Under the pieces are notes generated by a model. The model was given only the letters and a program-made list of their open reading frames with translations. It was not told the origin of the DNA and did no database searches. Of a DNA stretch of 64,000 nt, positions 1-63,279 are shown piece after piece (position 1 is the first letter of the stretch; each line of letters opens with the position of its first letter). The DNA comes from Stylophora pistillata (Eukaryota). Location: contig NW_019218050.1 in the NCBI RefSeq assembly GCF_002571385.2, forward strand, positions 276,333 to 340,332, given 5' to 3'. A program made the translations under genes and the position numbers.

Positions 1-228
1 ATCTTTTGTAAATTAAGTATACATGTGTACATGAATAACAGCAAATTTGAAGGAAACAGTCCTCTTAAGTATTCTCACATAAACCTTAATGGGTAAACAA
101 AACATACAAGCTAAAAAGGTCTTTTGAGACAGGATTCTACAGGAATGAAGCACAGGAAATACATAAAATGCAGTCAGGAAACGGTGATCTGATCTTAAGG
201 AAAAAAATTAAGACATAATTGCACTCAC

Positions 229-702
229 CACAATCTCAACACCAAACATGATCCCATCATAAGGAGGAAGGGCGCCTTTGTAATGAACGATTGCATCCAC
301 ATTCTTCTTTAAATCATCCATCCACACAAGTACCTTACATCCTTCATTCTCCGTCAAAGCCCATCTCAGAAGATCCTGTCTGTCATTCACAATGCTACAT
401 CTTTTACTAAAGGATTGAACAGCCAGCAAAATTTGAGCGTCTTCTAATGAGATAACTTGTAACTCTTCTTTAGGACAATCGACCTCCAGACACTTTTGCT
501 TCAGACCACGTAAAGCTATCTTCTCACTGTCTTGAGCGGGTTGTTCGTCTACTGAACGAGCTTCAAATAATTCGCCTTTCAAGGCTATCGGAGGTTGCGT
601 TCCGTAGACGTAATTCGACAACATTCCCCACAGTACACCAGAATCTTGGGTCGAGGGGTCTTCCAAATCGCGAAGGAGAATGAAATTATTCCTCTTTTCC
701 AT
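229..702 (-). CDS. CYLD: First coding exon of a CYLD-like ubiquitin C-terminal hydrolase (N-terminal segment plus start of CAP-Gly 1); gene continues off the left edge
   Basis: ATG at 702. Translation ends 'VLVWMDDLKKNVDAIVHYKGALPPYDGIMFGVEIV', matching the CYLD CAP-Gly1 pattern (recalled human 'GVVRFRGPL..GIFFGVELL'). Phase-0 donor GTGAGT at 228. The USP domain is outside the window. Confidence 0.75.
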
Positions 703-42317: not shown

Positions 42318-45300
42318 ATGACTCTGTTTTACATTCTCCTTAAGAATATTAGGGAATGCGCTCTCTTTAAGAAACATGTTTACCATGCTTCTAAACAGTT
42401 GCGAGGCAAAGAATTAGAAAGAGGAACGATACTCCTGGAAGATCCAAATGACAAAACGCGGTTCGTTGTGGCCGATCGCAAAGAAGTCTTCTTCGATAAG
42501 AGCTGTGTCGAGGGCCTCGACGATAAGTCAGAACTCCTTTCAGACGAATTAGCAGAAGTGCTTTTGGAGATTATTTCTCTAGACGAACGACTACGGTTAT
42601 TCCGACAAAGAGTACGGGTAAGTCCGATTTCCACTGATAAAGACAGTAAGCGTTTCTACGTCAGCTGCGTTCCATTAGTCTGGGAGATCAGATCTTGAAG
42701 CAGTCACGGCTGTAGGTGCTTTGAATTACGTCTCTCAGTGCTTCAAACTAAACAGCAGCGAAAGGTTTCCGAATGATAGTTTTTGTTCTGTTGGTGGACA
42801 TGAAACGTGACAACCAGAGAATCAAATCAGGAAGTAAAATTTATAAGTCAACTCATGAAGAACGATGGCTCCAATTAGAATTAATTACTTCTGGTTACAC
42901 TTTTTGCAGGAAAGTTGTAACTAATGGTACATGCGTTTTCATAACAAATATCTAATAGCAATCACACCGTAATGACATCGTTTTTTTTTACTGATAATAC
43001 AAAGCAGACGGGCGTAAAATGGAAAAACAACACATGATTGTTAGGCTGGCTTAAAGGTTAAACCTCAAGAGTTTTGACTGGATGAAAATTACAAAGACTG
43101 GAGACGCTTGTCGCAACACGAAACGAACATTTATCGCGTAGATCCAAATTGTATACCGTTTTAATCCAAGCTGTAAAGTTTCTAACATGGTGATGATTTT
43201 CGAAACAAGCTACATCTTATTTGAGTTCATTTCGCATTTTTCTCTTGCGTGTTAACTCACGAGCATTCAGTTGTAACATGCTTGATGACTTGACTGGTTT
43301 TCATTTCGATAATATGATCTGTAACAGATGATATCTTAGGGATCGTGTGGCGAAATAAATGCATTTATCTCCCCTGAACGGTCTTTTCAGTTTACCTCAG
43401 AGCGTCTACTGACTTAACGTGCAGAATCTTTATGAGAAATTTGGAGATGTCTTCCAAGTTGGATTCTGTAGTCGTAACTTTGTGAAAAAATGGATCGTAA
43501 TCAGTTAGATACAAATTATTTACTCTTGATGTGTTTGTGCTTATAGCAGCCCATTATGAAGCCTTTACGTCTATCTAGTTAGAGGGTAAAGAAGGCTGTT
43601 ATCCATTTCGTCGATTGTGTAAACACAGAAGAAGAAAAAGTCTGAGTTCCTCACAAGATATAAAGTCCTAGGATTTCTGGCTCTGATGCTGTGATGACCT
43701 ATAATATTCTGAACTCACAGATAGCAAATTTATACACAACTCAACGAAATATGAATTTCGAGTTGCCTTTAAAGATTGCATCATCACTTTTACCTGTATG
43801 TTTCCTTTGGCCTTTTCTAAATCCCCTCCAAAGGTTTTGAATCATTCAATATCAAAATCTAAACTTTATAAAAATATAATTCAACATCAGCCGGCAAAAT
43901 AAACAAAAAACTTAAGAACAAAGCCGCACAGGAACTGAAAACACATAAGAAGGGACGTATGTTTCAGATCAAACCAAAACAAGTTGCAAAACACTTCATT
44001 GATGTCATCAAACCCAGTTGTTAGTGAAACCAAGGGTTAAGTATAGATTTGCTTTCAGGAAAGTAGCCGGAGGGTCACTTACTCAGAGGCTGAGCTTTTG
44101 AGACCAAGGACACCTACAGAAGGTATGTGCAATGCTATTTAAGACATCATTTCAATCGTCGGATACTAAGTGTAGGTCACGTGGATGACTGAGTAGCATA
44201 ACTTGCGATTTAACTCTCTCTGTCTAGCTTACCAGAATTAGCACTTACCGATTAAATTTCCGATGGTATGTTTGCATATGGCTGTGTATTTATTTACCTC
44301 CACTTCGGTTAATTTTCGTTTGAACTTTCTGGTGTGTTTTTAAATTTAACGTGTCTTATTTGTACTTGCGTAACGGCACTTGGTGAACCATTTTTTCATG
44401 TAATTAACTTTCTGACACGTTCGGAAATTCAAATAGGATCTCCTTCCCCCTCCAACATTGATTAATCCATGAGTATTGGTCCGGGGCTCGAACCCTCGAC
44501 CTCTCGCATAACACAATCCGGCGCTCTAGCCAATTGAACTAACCGGGAGGCGGTTAAAAAGGATCTCCTTCCCCCTTCACCATTGATCAATCCAGCTGAC
44601 GTTATTTTAATCTCAGGTGCTGACGGGAGACCTAGAAGTAGACGGTCAGAATCTAGGTCCGCTGCCAGACGAGATGAAGAGCGTCAAAAACTGGAAAATG
44701 AGCTAACATTGCAGAGAGAACAAATAGACAACTTAACTGCAAGAAAAGAAGACCTTGAGAAGCAGTTGTACGAAAAAGGTAAGGAACAAAGCAAATATGT
44801 CTTTTAAGTAGGAATACTAATAATTTAAGAATTTTAGAGGGTTCAATAAAACGATGCATGAAATGAAGCAGGAGGTAAAACGAAAAACAAACATTCAGCT
44901 GATGTGGCGACTTATGAATTTGAGGGGGAAGTGAGTTTACACTGCTTAAGCTTAAAAAGTGAAGCAAAACTGTTTGATAAAAAATTTACGTAATCCTTTC
45001 ACTCCCAAGACCTGATTAGGAATTCTCCTTACTGTCTAACATATGATTTTTTATGAGATTGTTTTGGAGAATTTGGCATTGGATCAACTAATAATTCCTT
45101 AGTCGATATTTTTCTTTATTCTCATTTCTTGTCTGCTTGATATTGTATTGGTATTGTAAGGAGAAATTCTGTCTTGGTCTCTCATGGGAGTTAAAACGTT
45201 AATCTAGGATGGAAAAACTGGAAAATGAGCTAAAAATTACAGAGAGAACAAATCAACTCCTTAAGTACAAAAATCGAAGCGCTTGAGAGGCAGTTGTCGG

Positions 45301-51300: not shown

Positions 51301-51359
51301 GGGATCCTGAGGATCGTCCAAGGATTGAGGATATCGTTAATATGTTGGGCATGGGCTGA
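42318..51359 (+). CDS. Kinase K4: CYLD-N-like domain, coiled coil, TKL kinase, pseudokinase; exons 42318-42617, 44059-44122, 44617-44778, 46345-46470, 46846-47804, 49417-50334, 51165-51359 (~907 aa)
   Basis: All junctions GT-AG and phase-consistent (0,1,1,1,0,0); total 2724 nt with no internal stop seen. Kinase 1: GEGAWG, VAVK, HRDLSSAN, DYG. Kinase 2: GKGSLG, VAVK, HRNVSSAN, KLTISIAT. Linking exon 1 to the kinase exons is inferred. Confidence 0.8.
44477..44555 (-). mobile_element. tRNA-derived SINE head
   Basis: Reverse complement of ccgcctcccggttagttcaattggctagagcg...gggttcgagccccgg; sits between two ~35-bp direct repeats (aggatctccttccccc...). Confidence 0.65.
45208..45306 (+). pseudogene. 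Degenerate duplicate of the K4 coiled-coil exon
   Basis: KLENEL..LQREQINSLSTKIEALERQLSEN with a 1-bp insertion; the downstream intron is homologous to 44800-44940. Confidence 0.6.
45580..46322. repeat. ~47-bp C-rich minisatellite, ~16 copies, intronic
   Basis: Unit TTATTGAACCTCTCCTCCCCCCATCCCCTCCCTACCGACAATCCCAG. Confidence 0.95.
47888..49042 (-). mobile_element. Non-autonomous AcademH-like transposon in a K4 intron
   Basis: TIR TAGTCTCCTTCGCAGC/GCTGCGAAGGAGACTA; flanks CTCACTTCG and CTCACTTCT (8/9). RecQ-like fragment 'YQKLAIQKFVVQKQDVLVNLPTNSEKSLIYQALP' at 48654-48839. Confidence 0.75.
50426..50876. mobile_element. MITE, possibly Harbinger-like, in the last K4 intron
   Basis: Imperfect TIR gcccc..tttatatggtctcgggtacc / ggtacctgagaccatgtaaatggggc with TGA on both flanks. 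Confidence 0.6.
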
Positions 51360-54251: not shown

Positions 54252-56856
54252 TAATAGGAGGCGAGATACGAACAATGTAAATGCCTGTATTTTTGCTTCA
54301 ATGACAGCGTTTTAAAGCTTACAACTATAAATATACAGCTTAAATTCAAAACGAGGCCCCCCTGCCATATCTGCCTGCACCCCTTAGAAACCTCGCCTTG
54401 TTGTGGAACGTGACAACTGGTAACAATCTGTATAGAAATTAGAACATCAAAATTGAAAAAAATGAATAAATGGGGAGTGGCGGAAGGGAGGTACATTGCT
54501 ATATCTCGCCTCCAGTATTATTCGTACAATTATAATTATACTTCAGATTGCAAGCAGCCTTTGCAAAATCTCCAATTGTACATCATAATACTCGTCTGGA
54601 TATAACAATGTATGTTCAAAGCTTCAAGACCTCGGTTCAACTGCAGCACTAGCTAAAAGAGAGCGGCCGACACTAACATTCCAAACAGGACGATAATAAA
54701 ACTTGAAAGTGGACTCATTTGTCCAATCAGCTAGACGAACTATTTCTGGAATAGAGAAGCCTGCTCTCGGCGCTGCAGAAGTAGCTGCTCCACGAGTGGA
54801 GTGAGCCCTGAATACTTTGTTATCAATTCCAGCTTCCAACAGACAGTTCTTAACCCACTGAGACAGGGTAGCAGAATTCACAGGCTAATGAGGGTTATTC
54901 ACAGAGAGGAATAACCTGTTTGGAGCAGCCACTGATTCTGGCCTAAAAGCCTGTGTTCGCCTTTCATATTCTTTAAGACACGAGCATGGGCACAGCAACT
55001 CATTTTCTGGGAAACTAGAGCGAAAGGAGGTCTTCAAGGGTTTTACAACCCGAAACCCTTTAGTGAGTACTGGGAGATTAAAAGAAACACCTTCTGGATG
55101 AAATCGTCTAAAACGTAAATCATGGGCAATTAGTTCAGAGCCCAAATAACTCGTAACTATGTTAACAACCCATGTAGACGTGTATCTGGGTACCGGTGGA
55201 CGGGAATTGAAAATCCCTTTTAGGAGCTGAACTACAAGGGGATGTTGCCCAACATCGTAACCTTCAATTTGTGAGTGTGTCGCAGACAAAGCTGAACGAT
55301 ACACGTTTAGTGTACGATACTCCAGGCCTGCCTCAAAGTGACTGGCTAGGAAGTTTAACACTGAACCAAAAGATGCTGAAAGGGGATTGAGTTGTTGTTC
55401 ACGACACCAACAAGTCCACTTTTTCCAGGCTGAAGAATAAGTTTTTTCTGTCCTGGTTCTCCATGCAGCCTGGAGCAGTCTTTGAGCTGGTAGTGAAACT
55501 GTTGTACCTTCATATCGACTCCTGAGACTAGCCATGCGGCTAGTTGAAGGTGGGCAAGAGGGTGAAACTTGTTCTCTTGTCTCAGTAGCCCTGGGAACGA
55601 TGGGAGAAATAGGGGATTGTCTATTGTTAATTCTAACAACAAGGGGTACCATGGTTGGGTTTCCCACACTGAAGTCACAATTGTCAACTGAAAGACTGAC
55701 TGACACAGAACTTGCTTTAGTCACCGCACTATTAGGGCAAATGGAGGGAATGCGTATCCCTTGAGCTGGCTCCAATCCAGATTAAAGGCATCCACTCCCT
55801 CTGCCTCTGGATCTGGCTTCCAACTCACACACCTGGGTAGTTGTGTTCTCAGTCTGCTTGCAAAAAAGATCTATTGTGAAGGGGCCCCATTTGTCTTTGA
55901 TCCCTTGTGGATCGAAATCGGCCACAAAGTTTAGCCGCCCCGGAAAGTGGTGAGCTTCGACTGTGATAGACCGATTTAGACACCATTGCCAAAGGTCGAA
56001 GGCTAGGCTTGACAAAATCAGTGATGTGGGCCCACCCATATTTTTTATATAGCTGTATTGTCCATCATTAACTTTACATGGATGTTGCACTTGTTTTTTA
56101 GGAATGACTTAAGGGCAAAACCGCCCGCTAGAAGTTCTAAACAATTTATTTGTAAGAGCCTTTCTGACTGAGACCAAAGCCCTCTGGTCTGAAAGTTTCC
56201 ACAACGTGCTCCCCATCCCATCGATGAAGCATCTGTTTCGATTGTCAAGTGAGGAGGGGTTCGTAAAATTGCTCTCCCGTTCCAAGCAGAAAGGTGTTCT
56301 CTCCACCATTTTAGTTCTTCGAGGGCTTCCTCTGTCCAACACACTGGGGACTCGTAGCCCCCATGAAGGGTTAGACTGTGCTTTTTGACTGCTCGGATGT
56401 GACGATAATGAAGGGGTGCTGGGAACACCACTTGGATCGAAGCACTTAGTTTCCTCAAAAGCCGAGCTAGCTCTGTTATCGTGATGTCTCGGTTTTCCAG
56501 AACTTTCTGGCATTCTCTTCTGATACTCTTTACTTTGTCTAAGGGAAGGCTGATATTTAGTGTAACTGAATTTATGCGGAACCTAGAAACTCTATTGACT
56601 GTGTAGGATTTAGCTGGGATTTTTTGTAATTGACCACAAACCCTAATATCTCTAAAAGGGTGACTGTCAATGTGGTATGATATGTTAGAGTTTCTTCGGT
56701 GGAGGCCATCAGTAAAAAATCGTCTAAATAAATGATCAGACGAATTCCTTACTTTCTTAACAGGCCTATCACGGGTTTCAAAAACTTGATAAAGACTCTG
56801 GGGGCACTTTCTATTCCAAATGGGAGGCATGCAAACTCCCACTGAGTACCATTCTT
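54252..56856 (-). mobile_element. Degenerate 5'-truncated DIRS-type tyrosine-recombinase retrotransposon
   Basis: Frameshifted RT (CLPFG..SAPRVF; YLDD), RNase H (IETDASSMGWGA..INCLEL), 'GPFTIDLF' MT-like segment, recombinase ('YRTLNVYRSALS', 'RAHSTRGAATS'), and complementary repeats at the 3' end. Confidence 0.9.
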
Positions 56857-59940: not shown

Positions 59941-62430
59941 ATGAAAGTATGCTTATTATATTACTCATACTGAAGATAGTGAAATGCGCCCTCCTCAAGG
60001 TAAATGTTTACTTGGCCAGGCAAATTAAACATTACAAGAAGTAAACATTAGAAAAAGGAACGATACTCGAAAGTGAGCAAACCAAGTAGACCAGATTCTT
60101 TGTGGCTGATCGAAAAGAAGTATGAGGGAATCGACAGAAAGTTAGAATCTCTTTGATTTGTAGAGGTTGAACTGCTGGGAACGATTATGGGTTTTCAACC
60201 GACAGCGACGCTCTAGAGGACAGACAGAAACGGTGAGTGATTTTTACCGGTTAAATCAGTTCGTGGTTCAGTGCCAATCGCTGTCCATCAGCGCGGACTA
60301 CAGAGTTCGAAGCAATTAGCTTCTTTGAATTATGTTGCTTGGTTTTAATGACTTAGAACTAAGCAGCAGTTGAAAGTTTCTCCATGAATTTGTTTTTCTG
60401 TCGGTAGAATTGATACGTGACGACTCGAGTGTCAAACCAGGAAGTAGAATTAAGAAGAGCCAGCCCCATCATTAAGACCAATGACCCCGGCCCCAACCAA
60501 AATTTATACTTCTGATCACGCTTCATCAAGAGAAGAAGTAACAAATAGGAAACGTTTCTTCAATTAACAAATCTGATAGAAAGATGAAACAGTAATTATC
60601 TGCCATTTACCGAAAATAAGCGACAGAAAAGCGTAAACGAATGCAACACATGATTGTCAGCAGGCATAAAAGTTAAAGCTCAAGGATTCTGGTTAAATGA
60701 AAATAACAAGATGCCTCCGGCATCACAAAACGTACATTTCGATATATTTATCGCTTGGAACCAAGTAACGTCCAAGTTGTGATCCCTGTCGTAAAGTTTC
60801 TACGACAGGGATTGGATATTGTGAGACTGGTTTTATTTCAGTTGAGTCGATTGTGCATTTTTCTCATGCGTGTTTACCCGAGAGCACTTAGTCGTAGCCC
60901 GTTTAATGACTTGATTTTTATTTCAATAAGGCGATAACCTGTAACTGGCAATATCTTGCAGATCATCTGACGGATTAAAATGAATTTATCTTCAATTAGC
61001 GGTCTCCCTTATTGACCTCAGTTTTCTTATAGACTAGATGTGTAAAATTCTTTCGAGAAGTCATTTAGAATTGCCTTCAAAGGTGGATTCAATAATCGTA
61101 GCTTACCGGACATTTGGGCGTGATTAAACGAAAATTATTTTCTCTTGTATTTAAGTTTTGTACTTAAAGCGGTCTACTTTTAGTAAATAAAAACATTCAA
61201 GTAAAAACATTTTAGTAAATAAAACATTCATTTTAAAAATTTCAGGAAGCTACACTTAAGAGGATGGAGGAAGGGAAGATGTAATCTGCTTTGCGACCGG
61301 CATGAGGAACAAAGAAAAACATCTGAGTTCCCATTTGGCATACAAGCCCAGACCTTCGGATTTTGCGCCCTAATACTTTGAATTCCTAGCGAGGGAACTC
61401 TTCTTTACTACATGCTCGAAGAACGAGTCTAAAATCTGCCATGTTTCTTATTTTTACACTAAGAGGGCTTGTTAAAATAGTTGTTGGGAAAACCAGCGAC
61501 ATCCGTTCATCCGCTTAAAACTAAACAGCTCCTGTACTTTACGAAAACATCTGCCATCCCTCTCCAGCATATTGATTAATATTATTGGCGAGTAATGCCT
61601 TTGGATTAAGCCTGACACCACACGACACAATGATAGCTCTACAGATTAATCTAAACCTAATAATAAAATACAATAACCTTGTTATCGGAGAAAACAAGAC
61701 GTCGGTATATGTTTGCTTTAAGGGAAGTGATCGGAGGAACGCTCACGTATAGGCTAAGCTTTTGGGACCAAGAACACCTTCTACAGTAGGTATGTACGAG
61801 CAGCTATCAAAGACATATGTTCAATTAGATACTATGTGCATGATTAAATGGAATAACAGAACTCTCTCTGACTCTTTCCGGAAAGAGCTGCAATTTGATA
61901 TTCCATCTTAAGCCTGTCTACACATCGTTCGGTGTTAGATATATACTGAAACGATTACAACCTACAGGGTCAGAGAAACTGGTGGATGTTTACCTCCACT
62001 TTATATAATTAGTGAATTATTTTATCACATCTAAACTTTTCAGTATGCTTTTAAATTTGAACATGGTCCTTTGAAAGGACCTCTCCTCCCTCCCCCCTCC
62101 CTCCTCCCCCCTCATCATGGAATAATCCCATTCACAGTATTATAGTCTCAGACGCCGACGGGAGGAGAATACTCCGAAGTAGACGGTCAGAAGTTAGGTC
62201 TACCAGACAAGAAAGAAACTCTTTGAAACTCTTAACGGTGGCCAATTTACATCATCATCCCCCCCCCCACACACACACAAACACACACCGACGTAGCATT
62301 ACAGTTTCTTTAGAAACTTACTTCCTTTATTTACTGGTCAAAACGTAGCTAAAAATAACAGAGAACAAATCAACACCATAACAGCAGAGACGGAAGAACT
62401 TAAGGAGCATAAAAACATATTTTTTGGTAG
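59941..62430 (+). pseudogene. Truncated K4-like pseudogene: decayed CYLD-N-like exon (59941-60232), ~64-nt exon (~61723-61790), coiled-coil exon pieces (62151-62430)
   Basis: Clear nucleotide homology to K4 exons 1-3 and to 62956-63279, with indels and stops; no kinase exons follow. Confidence 0.75.
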
Positions 62431-62955: not shown

Positions 62956-63279
62956 ATGAAAGTGTATTATATTCTTATACGGAATATAGAGAAATGCGCT
63001 CTCTTCCAGGGAGATGTTTACTTAGCCTCTAAAAGGTTGCAAGGCAAAGAATTAGAAAAAGGAACGATACTGAAAAGCGAGCAAACCAACCAGACCAGAT
63101 TCTTTGTGGCTGATCGAAAAGAAATATTTTTTGATAGGAACTGCGTTGAGGAAATCGACGGAAAGTTAGAACTTCTTACATATGCGGAGGCTGAACAGCT
63201 TTTGGAGATTATTTCTCTAGAGGAACGACTGCGGGTATTCGACGCCGGACAGCGACGCTCCGGAGGACAGACAGAAGCG
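62956..63279 (+). CDS. First exon (CYLD-N-like) of another K4 paralog; gene presumably continues past the right edge
   Basis: Open 108-codon exon, well over half identical by eye to K4 exon 1, with a phase-0 donor GTAAGT at 63280. Confidence 0.75.

Follow-up and report, generated by a model that had tools for sequence, protein, structure and literature searches.

A coral gene encoding a predicted kinase-pseudokinase tandem with an N-terminal domain related in sequence to that of CYLD

Background

The deubiquitinase CYLD acts as a central brake on signalling through NF-kB and JNK and in cell death, and to our knowledge neither an annotated domain nor a role has been assigned to its first ~100 residues. 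Plant tandem kinase proteins (TKPs), such as WTK1/Yr15, Rpg1 and Sr62, have a pseudokinase after the kinase and in some cases one more, integrated domain, and are encoded by clustered, duplicated genes; many of them join kinases of different families. In the JAK kinases, a pseudokinase and a kinase also stand in tandem, and the pseudokinase serves as a regulator. A published account of CYLD describes only its CAP-Gly and deubiquitinase (DUB) domains (PMC5796713). Here we describe K4, a gene found in a stretch of 64,000 nucleotides of the genome of the coral Stylophora pistillata (RefSeq assembly GCF_002571385.2, contig NW_019218050.1, positions 276,333 to 340,332 of the forward strand), which is referred to as the window and whose first letter is position 1. 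K4 joins a domain related to the N-terminus of CYLD (hereafter the N-domain) to a coiled coil, a kinase and a pseudokinase.

As far as can be judged from homology, what is new is a kinase of the tyrosine kinase-like (TKL) group that is paired with a pseudokinase and carries a CYLD-derived N-terminal domain hitherto without a name. An initial annotation of the window had named no earlier description of this architecture, and our full-text literature search likewise returned no account of the N-domain, of CAP-Gly kinases or of cnidarian tandem kinases. The proteins of this kind in databases are uncharacterised or automatically named predictions.

Results

Gene model and transcript evidence

The genome searched comprises 398 Mb in 5513 contigs, in which the window is G000:C266:276333-340332. 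All sequence searches with K4 were made one exon at a time. The RNA evidence comes from four runs, three of them as contigs and one as raw reads, mapped onto positions 42200-48000 of the window. K4 occupies 42318-51359 on the plus strand, and its coding sequence of 2724 nt (907 codons plus stop) is divided among seven exons:

42318..42617, plus strand: exon 1 of 100 codons, with the start codon and the complete CYLD-N-type domain; donor in phase 0; RNA colinear from 42200
44059..44122, plus strand: exon 2, short linker of 64 nt; junctions 42617^44059 and 44122^44617 in X1 record 1; homologous exon in L030, a locus of another coral
44617..44778, plus strand: exon 3, Arg/Ser-rich stretch and coiled-coil unit; junctions in X1 record 1
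46345..46470, plus strand: exon 4, another coiled-coil unit, which repeats exon 3; junctions 44778^46345 (X1) and 46470^46846 (X1 and X14)
46846..47804, plus strand: exon 5, long coiled coil and kinase 1 to just beyond the APE motif
49417..50334, plus strand: exon 6, end of kinase 1, linker, then pseudokinase; Pfam Pkinase 8.4e-24, in two stretches
51165..51359, plus strand: exon 7, C-terminal end of the pseudokinase and stop; Pfam PK_Tyr_Ser-Thr 1.7e-5, profile positions 186-258

The first exon is joined to the exon of kinase 1 by a contig of polyA RNA (X1 record 1; 1442 nt, depth 12) that spans 42200-42617, 44059-44122, 44617-44778, 46345-46470 and 46846-47427, with GT..AG at all four of the introns crossed and with even depth. 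The last of its junctions, 46470^46846, is also present in a contig of a second study (X14 record 8). Exons 1-4 add up to 300+64+162+126 = 652 nt, which makes 46846 a second codon position, as the kinase frame requires. Since an in-frame stop codon at 42255-57 lies within the RNA contig, translation is expected to start at the ATG at 42318. Further downstream, X1 record 4 (2281 nt) covers 47423-47804, continues with 537 nt from beyond the mapped interval and then with kinase-2-like sequence, a layout that is consistent with a 47804^49417 junction.

For the 3' part, the reading frame and the splice sites were read from the sequence: exons 5, 6 and 7 are all in phase 0, and there are a donor at 47805, an acceptor at 49415-16, a donor at 50335-36, an acceptor at 51163-64 and the stop codon at 51357-59. 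Exon 7 has no direct RNA junction, and its placement follows the exon order, which is identical in L030 and in the tandem duplicate K5 (see below); the junction of exons 6 and 7 is thus predicted from splice sites and homology. Exons 3 and 4 match each other in tblastn, and the exon 3 unit occurs at least four times in the L030 orthologue. The initial annotation had proposed that exon 1 is spliced in frame to a kinase-pseudokinase pair and had pointed to RNA over 42617-44059 and on to 46846 as the place to look; the RNA contigs, the splice sites and the frame all agree with this proposal, X1 record 1 itself running from exon 1 into the kinase exon.

Several observations concern the introns. 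X14 record 8 begins at 46269, within intron 3 and 76 nt 5' of the exon 4 acceptor, and may represent an alternative 5' end or unspliced RNA. The depth of RNA contigs rises to between several hundred and more than 13,000 at 44334-44560, 44916-45303 and 47826-48000, which lie within introns 2, 3 and 5; these pieces have many loose ends into unrelated sequence and are dispersed repeats that are expressed elsewhere, outside the K4 mRNA. The repeat at 44334-44560 in intron 2 looks tRNA-derived by eye. At 45865-46240 (plus strand), intron 3 contains overlapping open reading frames (ORFs) with a Pro/Ser/Leu-rich tandem repeat and low RNA depth.

Homology of exon 1 with the CYLD N-terminus

To compare exon 1 with CYLD, three alignments were used: A2, which contains 14 K4-type domains (identity to K4 down to 32%) drawn from the genome and from a whole-library search; A3, which represents the CAP-Gly-kinase exon family, that is, the relatives of an exon at 208-702 of the window; and A4, which contains the N-domain alone of five CYLD-type first exons, the verified CYLD exon included. 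The CYLD comparator in these tests is a coral gene on contig C1877 of the same genome.

By hhalign, A2 matches A4 with a probability of 96.6 (E 5.9e-10, 93 columns) and A3 with a probability of 91.2 (E 1e-6, 97 columns), and A3 matches A4 with a probability of 99.2 (E 1e-19). When the columns of A4 were shuffled 100 times, the best score against A2 was 17.9, as compared with 59.3 for the real alignment; for A3 the corresponding scores were 19.2 and 46.2. Reversed A4 and A3 scored 12.3 and 13.4 against A2. In HMMER searches with a hidden Markov model (HMM) of A2, the top matches among 719 ORF pieces of CYLD-type loci were all eight CYLD-type first exons (E 2e-8 to 2.7e-4; verified CYLD exon 1.8e-5), and noise started at 0.92. 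With an HMM of A4, the 208-702 exon ranked first among all 1225 stop-to-stop pieces of the window (5e-15), followed by K4 exon 1 (0.0019) and K5 exon 1 (0.46), with noise from 2.1. A direct BLASTP comparison of exon 1 with the N-domain of one CYLD-type paralogue gave E 1e-4, with 34% identity over 70 residues. By pairwise BLASTP, exon 1 and the 208-702 exon do not match significantly (E 4.5 and 0.39), and profiles are therefore needed.

On these profile matches, we conclude that K4 exon 1 is a homologue of the CYLD region that precedes CAP-Gly 1, which corresponds to about the first 105 residues of coral CYLD; in K4, the N-domain has a length of ~95 residues. The blocks that are conserved comprise a Y/F-I-L-L strand at the N-terminus, a strand with R/K-G-x-I/L, an E-Q-P loop, two more strands, and a pair of helices that ends in S-x-E-x-R; in both K4 and CYLD, the N-domain begins within a few residues of the initiator Met. 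The relationship of exon 1 to the pre-CAP-Gly part of CYLD had been suspected in the initial annotation, and it has now been substantiated by hhalign (including the 96.6 match to coral CYLD), HMMER, BLASTP and the shuffle controls. The blocks that had been picked out there by eye (Y/F-ILL, R/K-G-x-I/L and the C-terminal helix) recur in the A2-A3 hhalign alignment, and the donor of exon 1 does lie at the boundary between N-domain and CAP-Gly, as had been stated.

Other searches were less informative. Pfam has no family on K4 exon 1, the 208-702 exon or the exon at 62956. Searching the whole library with a profile of four close paralogues (A1) yielded 20 matches, nearly all of them exon-sized cnidarian ORFs, and no CYLD at E 0.001. 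A region search with residues 1-195 of the protein P0046 (see below) returned only orthologues of the CAP-Gly kinase and no CYLD, which reflects the limit of word sharing and is not counter-evidence to homology. Searched by sequence against the PDB, the 208-702 exon family matched only gp41, and by chance. In the ESM Atlas, residues 1-118 of P0046 lie near two chordate CYLD clusters (0.78 and 0.77), which we take as a lead only.

The comparator exon and CYLD itself

The initial annotation had treated the exon at 208-702 as CYLD-like. It is instead assigned as follows:

208..702, minus strand: first exon of a neighbouring CAP-Gly + coiled-coil + kinase gene, N-domain and first half of a CAP-Gly; not CYLD

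On the same strand 3' of this exon (L008) are the second half of the CAP-Gly (Pfam 1.2e-7) and then a coiled-coil + kinase ORF. The transcript-derived protein P0046 (714 aa; Pfam CAP_GLY and Pkinase) reproduces the 208-702 exon and joins all of these pieces, with 98% identity to the kinase ORF, which shows a CAP-Gly kinase gene; CYLD lies on other contigs (C1877 and others). Orthologues of P0046 are present in Oculina patagonica (LOC144651443), Actinostola and Nematostella vectensis (P0087), and this conserved CAP-Gly kinase is represented by P0046, P0066, P0087 and P0166.

In this genome, the 208-702 exon is related to at least 13 others; CYLD-type first exons of this kind consist of an N-domain and half a CAP-Gly. 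Such exons were found on C284, C1926, C1877, C1636, C1941 and C444 (L010-L018, L034-L036), and some of these may be haplotigs. On C1877, the first exon is followed by the remainder of CAP-Gly 1 and CAP-Gly 2, by a third CAP-Gly, and by exons of a ubiquitin-specific protease (USP) domain with Cys box, B-box and His box. In the PDB, these USP exons match CYLD entries only (human 2vhf, 1.8e-29 and 1.6e-16; zebrafish 3wxe-g). By these matches, the C1877 gene is a genuine CYLD, and its first exon encodes the N-domain and half a CAP-Gly. Far rarer than the first exons, the CYLD B-box/His USP exon is confined to three loci (C1877, C284:143891 and C1636:17392). A locus at ~109-114 kb of C265 (L019, G000:C265:108500-118499, minus strand) was rejected as a CYLD candidate: it has three CAP-Gly domains and is an ankyrin-repeat gene, CLIP3/CLIP4-like by eye.

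In CYLD and the CAP-Gly kinase alike, exon 1 ends inside the CAP-Gly after an FGVE-hydrophobic-V motif, the next codon being the GT of the intron; this common end point fits exon-level copying. K4 itself has none of the further CYLD domains. All seven exons are N-domain, coiled coil or kinase, with no USP catalytic domain or B-box; Pfam found no CAP_GLY in them, and a genome-wide PF01302 scan gave no match between 42 and 52 kb of the window.

Kinase and pseudokinase

Kinase 1 (exon 5; Pfam Pkinase 1.4e-23) contains all the catalytic motifs: GEGAWG (GxGxxG), VAVK, FEREM with the alpha-C Glu, HRDLSSAN, SDYG and SAPE. From these motifs, it is an intact eukaryotic protein kinase that is predicted to be active. 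Its closest solved relatives are TNNI3K (8e-25) and then TAK1 and IRAK4 (2e-14), which places it in the TKL group.

Kinase 2 is 51% identical to kinase 1, the two being internal duplicates. In kinase 2, HRD is replaced by HRN, the D-Y-G position by I-S-I, and the alpha-C Glu by Thr, and on the strength of these losses it is classed as a pseudokinase. A paralogue at 18104-18847 has the same catalytic losses, which indicates that the dead domain is old and has been kept. The gene K2 (16306-19795, plus strand) encodes a kinase and a pseudokinase, with HRN and with T-I-S-I at the DFG position, and has no detectable CYLD-N-type exon upstream.

Recurrence of the fusion

The arrangement of K4 is repeated in K5. 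Both belong to a cluster of related kinase genes in the window and its flanks, with matches at 3.6-4.8 kb, at 16.3-19.8 kb, on the minus strand at 31.9-34.0 kb, at 42.3-51.4 kb for K4 and from 62.9 kb onwards for K5. Two further copies of the exon 1 domain are found:

62956..63240, plus strand: K5 exon 1, tandem duplicate of K4; 62% identity to K4 exon 1, E 1e-41
59982..60122, plus strand: decayed copy of the exon 1 domain with 3 internal stops; tblastn 51% over residues 13-57

Beyond the end of the window (L031), K5 continues with pieces like exons 3, 4, 5, 6 and 7 in order, at 58-70% identity. The match between the 62956 exon and K4 exon 1 had already been noticed by eye.

The same fusion occurs in another coral (L030:15535-22680, GCA_036669915.2), where an independently annotated gene of 1056 aa with two Pkinase matches has the exon order of K4. 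Its identity to K4 is 73% for exon 1, 72% for exon 5, 72% for exon 6 and 67% for exon 7, and it also contains an exon-2-like piece and four exon-3/4-like pieces. In a more distant relative (L039), an exon 1 homologue (40%) lies 7 kb 5' of a coiled-coil + kinase exon with 59% identity on the same strand. For the distant exon 1 homologues P0038 and P0035, the contigs were short or uninformative.

Related fusions are found elsewhere in the S. pistillata genome. On C284, several CYLD-type first exons precede kinase exons instead of USP exons. For example, one open frame of 392 residues (L034) joins the latter half of CAP-Gly 2 (60% identity to CYLD exon 3, E 4e-17) to a long coiled coil and then a kinase (Pkinase 1.8e-18) with the signature of the anthozoan coiled-coil kinase family to which K4 belongs, ASRCRHPCLLQFIGAT; the layout of L035 is the same. 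An ORF of 634 aa for a Mutator-like transposase (Pfam 2.6e-98) lies at L034:4056-5957 (minus strand), within the intron that separates the CAP-Gly exons of a chimera from its CAP-Gly 2/kinase exon.

In total, four architectures occur in the genome: CYLD proper; N-domain, CAP-Gly 1, CAP-Gly 2, coiled coil and kinase (the C284 chimeras); N-domain, CAP-Gly 1, coiled coil and kinase, which is conserved to sea anemones; and N-domain, coiled coil, kinase and pseudokinase (K4, K5 and relatives). Judged from these sequences, one anthozoan TKL kinase family makes recurrent use of the CYLD N-terminal region as a module, and the fusions are recurrent and partly old. The initial annotation had supposed that a CYLD module was recruited locally; with a series of fusions in the genome and orthologues as far as Nematostella, this part of it did not hold.

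An N-domain of the K4 type was also found outside the kinase context. A frame of 296 aa at L003:916-1806 (G000:C166:586901-587791) contains one with 63% identity to exon 1, directly preceded by a TRADD-like_N match that is weak and lies below threshold (E 0.02; 15 bits, cut-off 23.7). No kinase exon follows to the end of the contig 3.6 kb downstream, and the N-domain may thus also be paired with modules of death pathways.

Predicted fold and selection

The AlphaFold2 (AF2) model of K4 exon 1 is confident and compact, with a predicted local distance difference test (pLDDT) of 81 and a predicted template modelling score of 0.74; the model of the CYLD N-domain has a pLDDT of 78.5. By reading of the two models, the strand order is identical and each ends with two C-terminal helices. 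Both models give weak SH3-like structure matches, many of them to identical chains, and a Foldseek search of the N-domain model against the PDB gave none at E 0.001 or better. The models thus suggest a small SH3-like barrel followed by two helices as the predicted fold of the N-domain. The idea that the N-domain is a degenerate CAP-Gly was found to be unsupported, as no CAP-Gly chain is among the best 50 structure matches of either model.

We calculated the ratio of nonsynonymous to synonymous substitutions (dN/dS) by the Nei-Gojobori method. For exon 1, the values for five pairs range from 0.32 to 0.66 and are all below 1; for the kinase and pseudokinase exons they range from 0.28 to 0.47, and for the short exon 7 from 0.37 to 0.71. 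The N-domain is under purifying selection like the rest of K4, which as a whole evolves fairly fast, and by these crude values exon 1 does not stand out. The comparison, which had been suggested in the initial annotation, therefore gives evidence of constraint on exon 1 and no clear excess over the kinase exons.

These results bear on the reading that the N-domain is a functionless remnant of the 5' end of CYLD, kept only for its promoter and start codon. The loss of CAP-Gly, the graded series from N-domain with two CAP-Gly through N-domain with one to N-domain alone, and the decayed exon 1 copies nearby would all fit such a remnant. However, dN/dS is below 1 in all five comparisons, the motifs are kept across K4-type sequences down to 32% identity and across three subfamilies, and the AF2 model is that of a confident, compact domain, so that we consider this reading quite improbable.

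Other elements in the window

A run of ORFs at 22324-25492 (minus strand) includes, at 23449-23895, a phospholipase-A2-like motif by eye, as in the N-termini of parvovirus capsids, and the run may be an endogenous viral or mobile element. Between K4 and K5, at 54885-56842 (minus strand), there are long ORFs that are retroelement-like by eye, with a polymerase/RNase H part and a recombinase-like part.

Discussion

On balance, we favour the view that K4 is a cytosolic multidomain TKL kinase in which the CYLD-derived N-domain serves as a targeting or adaptor module, the coiled coil oligomerises the protein and the pseudokinase regulates the kinase. In this scheme, the N-domain would take the kinase to the partner or place that the CYLD N-terminus addresses, either through a ligand common to CYLD or through contact of one N-domain with another; the Arg/Ser-rich repeated coiled coil would oligomerise K4; and the pseudokinase would act as an allosteric regulator of kinase 1. 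A kinase and a deubiquitinase could then act on one signalling platform. The N-domain is read in this way because it is the most N-terminal part of CYLD and of three kinase architectures, is conserved, and is kept when CAP-Gly is lost; its targeting role is thus suggested by recurrence and position.

Several points weigh against this interpretation. A single RNA contig from one run carries the junctions from exon 1 to exon 4, and in two further runs contigs of low depth (X14 record 5 and X2 record 12) continue past the donor of exon 1 into intron sequence. The other coral has a second copy whose annotation is that of a separate product of 244 aa with N-domain and coiled coil (P0026). The ESM Atlas gave no usable match for K4 exon 1 itself, and the three clades, compared over ~95 residues, give no rooted answer on the direction or number of fusions. 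Finally, no protein is known to us in which the N-domain has an assigned partner, location in the cell or activity.

As an alternative, the protein might be an integrated decoy, in which the CYLD-N-type domain mimics a pathogen target, and its change by an effector or protease releases the kinase-pseudokinase pair and triggers immunity. The order of kinase and pseudokinase with a non-kinase domain attached resembles plant TKPs in layout only; the tandem cluster with decayed copies is as in immune families of fast turnover, dN/dS over the whole gene is fairly high (0.3-0.7), and one N-domain paralogue lies behind the weak TRADD-like_N match. Nevertheless, nothing links an effector or protease to the N-domain in cnidarians, the pairwise dN/dS values of exon 1 do not clearly exceed those of the kinase exons, and the N-domain also heads a slowly evolving one-to-one orthologue from corals to Nematostella that looks constitutive. 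Moreover, the two K4 kinases are internal duplicates (51%), unlike those of many plant TKPs. We therefore regard the decoy as highly unlikely.

We give very little credence to the last alternative, that exons 1-4 form a small N-domain + coiled-coil gene, that a kinase gene starts near exon 4 or 5, and that the joining contig is read-through or an assembly chimera: it would accord with the separate 244-aa annotation, the start of X14 record 8 within intron 3 and the single contig for the first junctions, but X1 record 1 crosses four GT..AG introns in frame at even depth, the full-length copy of the other coral is one 1056-aa gene that starts with the exon 1 homologue, K5 repeats the arrangement, and the 244-aa copy precedes a reversed kinase fragment, which suggests a rearranged copy.

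In these genes, the CYLD N-terminal region behaves as an independent, conserved and portable domain that has been attached repeatedly to one kinase family in corals and sea anemones. This provides a handle on the role of the CYLD N-terminus, whose ligand should be common to CYLD and these kinases, and the N-domain can be defined as a model that is searchable across animals. In addition, the results document a kinase-pseudokinase tandem family in early-branching animals, whose graded CYLD-derived N-termini are useful for studying the origin of signalling proteins by exon shuffling. The immune-sensor reading, if true, would be a striking convergence with plant tandem kinases, and is speculative. 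In its fullest form, which we consider unlikely, anthozoans would repeatedly have grafted the addressing region of CYLD, with or without CAP-Gly, onto TAK1/IRAK-like kinases so that these share its platform address, and the fast-duplicating K4-type proteins would be animal counterparts of the tandem-kinase immune sensors of plants, with the CYLD-like domain as bait.

Comparison with known systems

In comparison with CYLD, K4 exon 1 is homologous to the first ~105 residues of the coral protein, with an identical predicted order of strands and helices. K4 differs in having no CAP-Gly, USP catalytic domain or B-box, and K4 is a kinase whereas CYLD is a deubiquitinase.

The CAP-Gly kinase (LOC144651443; automatically named 'U-box domain-containing protein 33' in Nematostella; P0046 here) belongs to the kinase family of K4, with 46% identity over coiled coil and kinase. 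It likewise has the N-domain at the very N-terminus and a coiled coil before the kinase, and it is a neighbour in the genome. It differs from K4 in that it keeps CAP-Gly 1 and has a single kinase and no pseudokinase; moreover, it is a one-to-one orthologue across Hexacorallia, whereas the K4-type genes are tandemly duplicated and diverge faster.

TNNI3K, TAK1 and IRAK4 are the best solved matches of kinase 1, in which the catalytic motifs are intact. These three proteins carry ankyrin repeats, a TAB-binding region and a death domain, respectively, and have neither a CYLD-type N-domain nor a C-terminal pseudokinase.

Plant TKPs resemble K4 at the level of layout, in the kinase-pseudokinase tandem with a non-kinase domain and in the clustered duplicates. 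They belong to an unrelated lineage, and the two kinases of K4 are internal duplicates. In JAK, the pseudokinase comes first, and the proteins are tyrosine kinases with FERM and SH2 domains; their homology to K4 is limited to the kinase fold.

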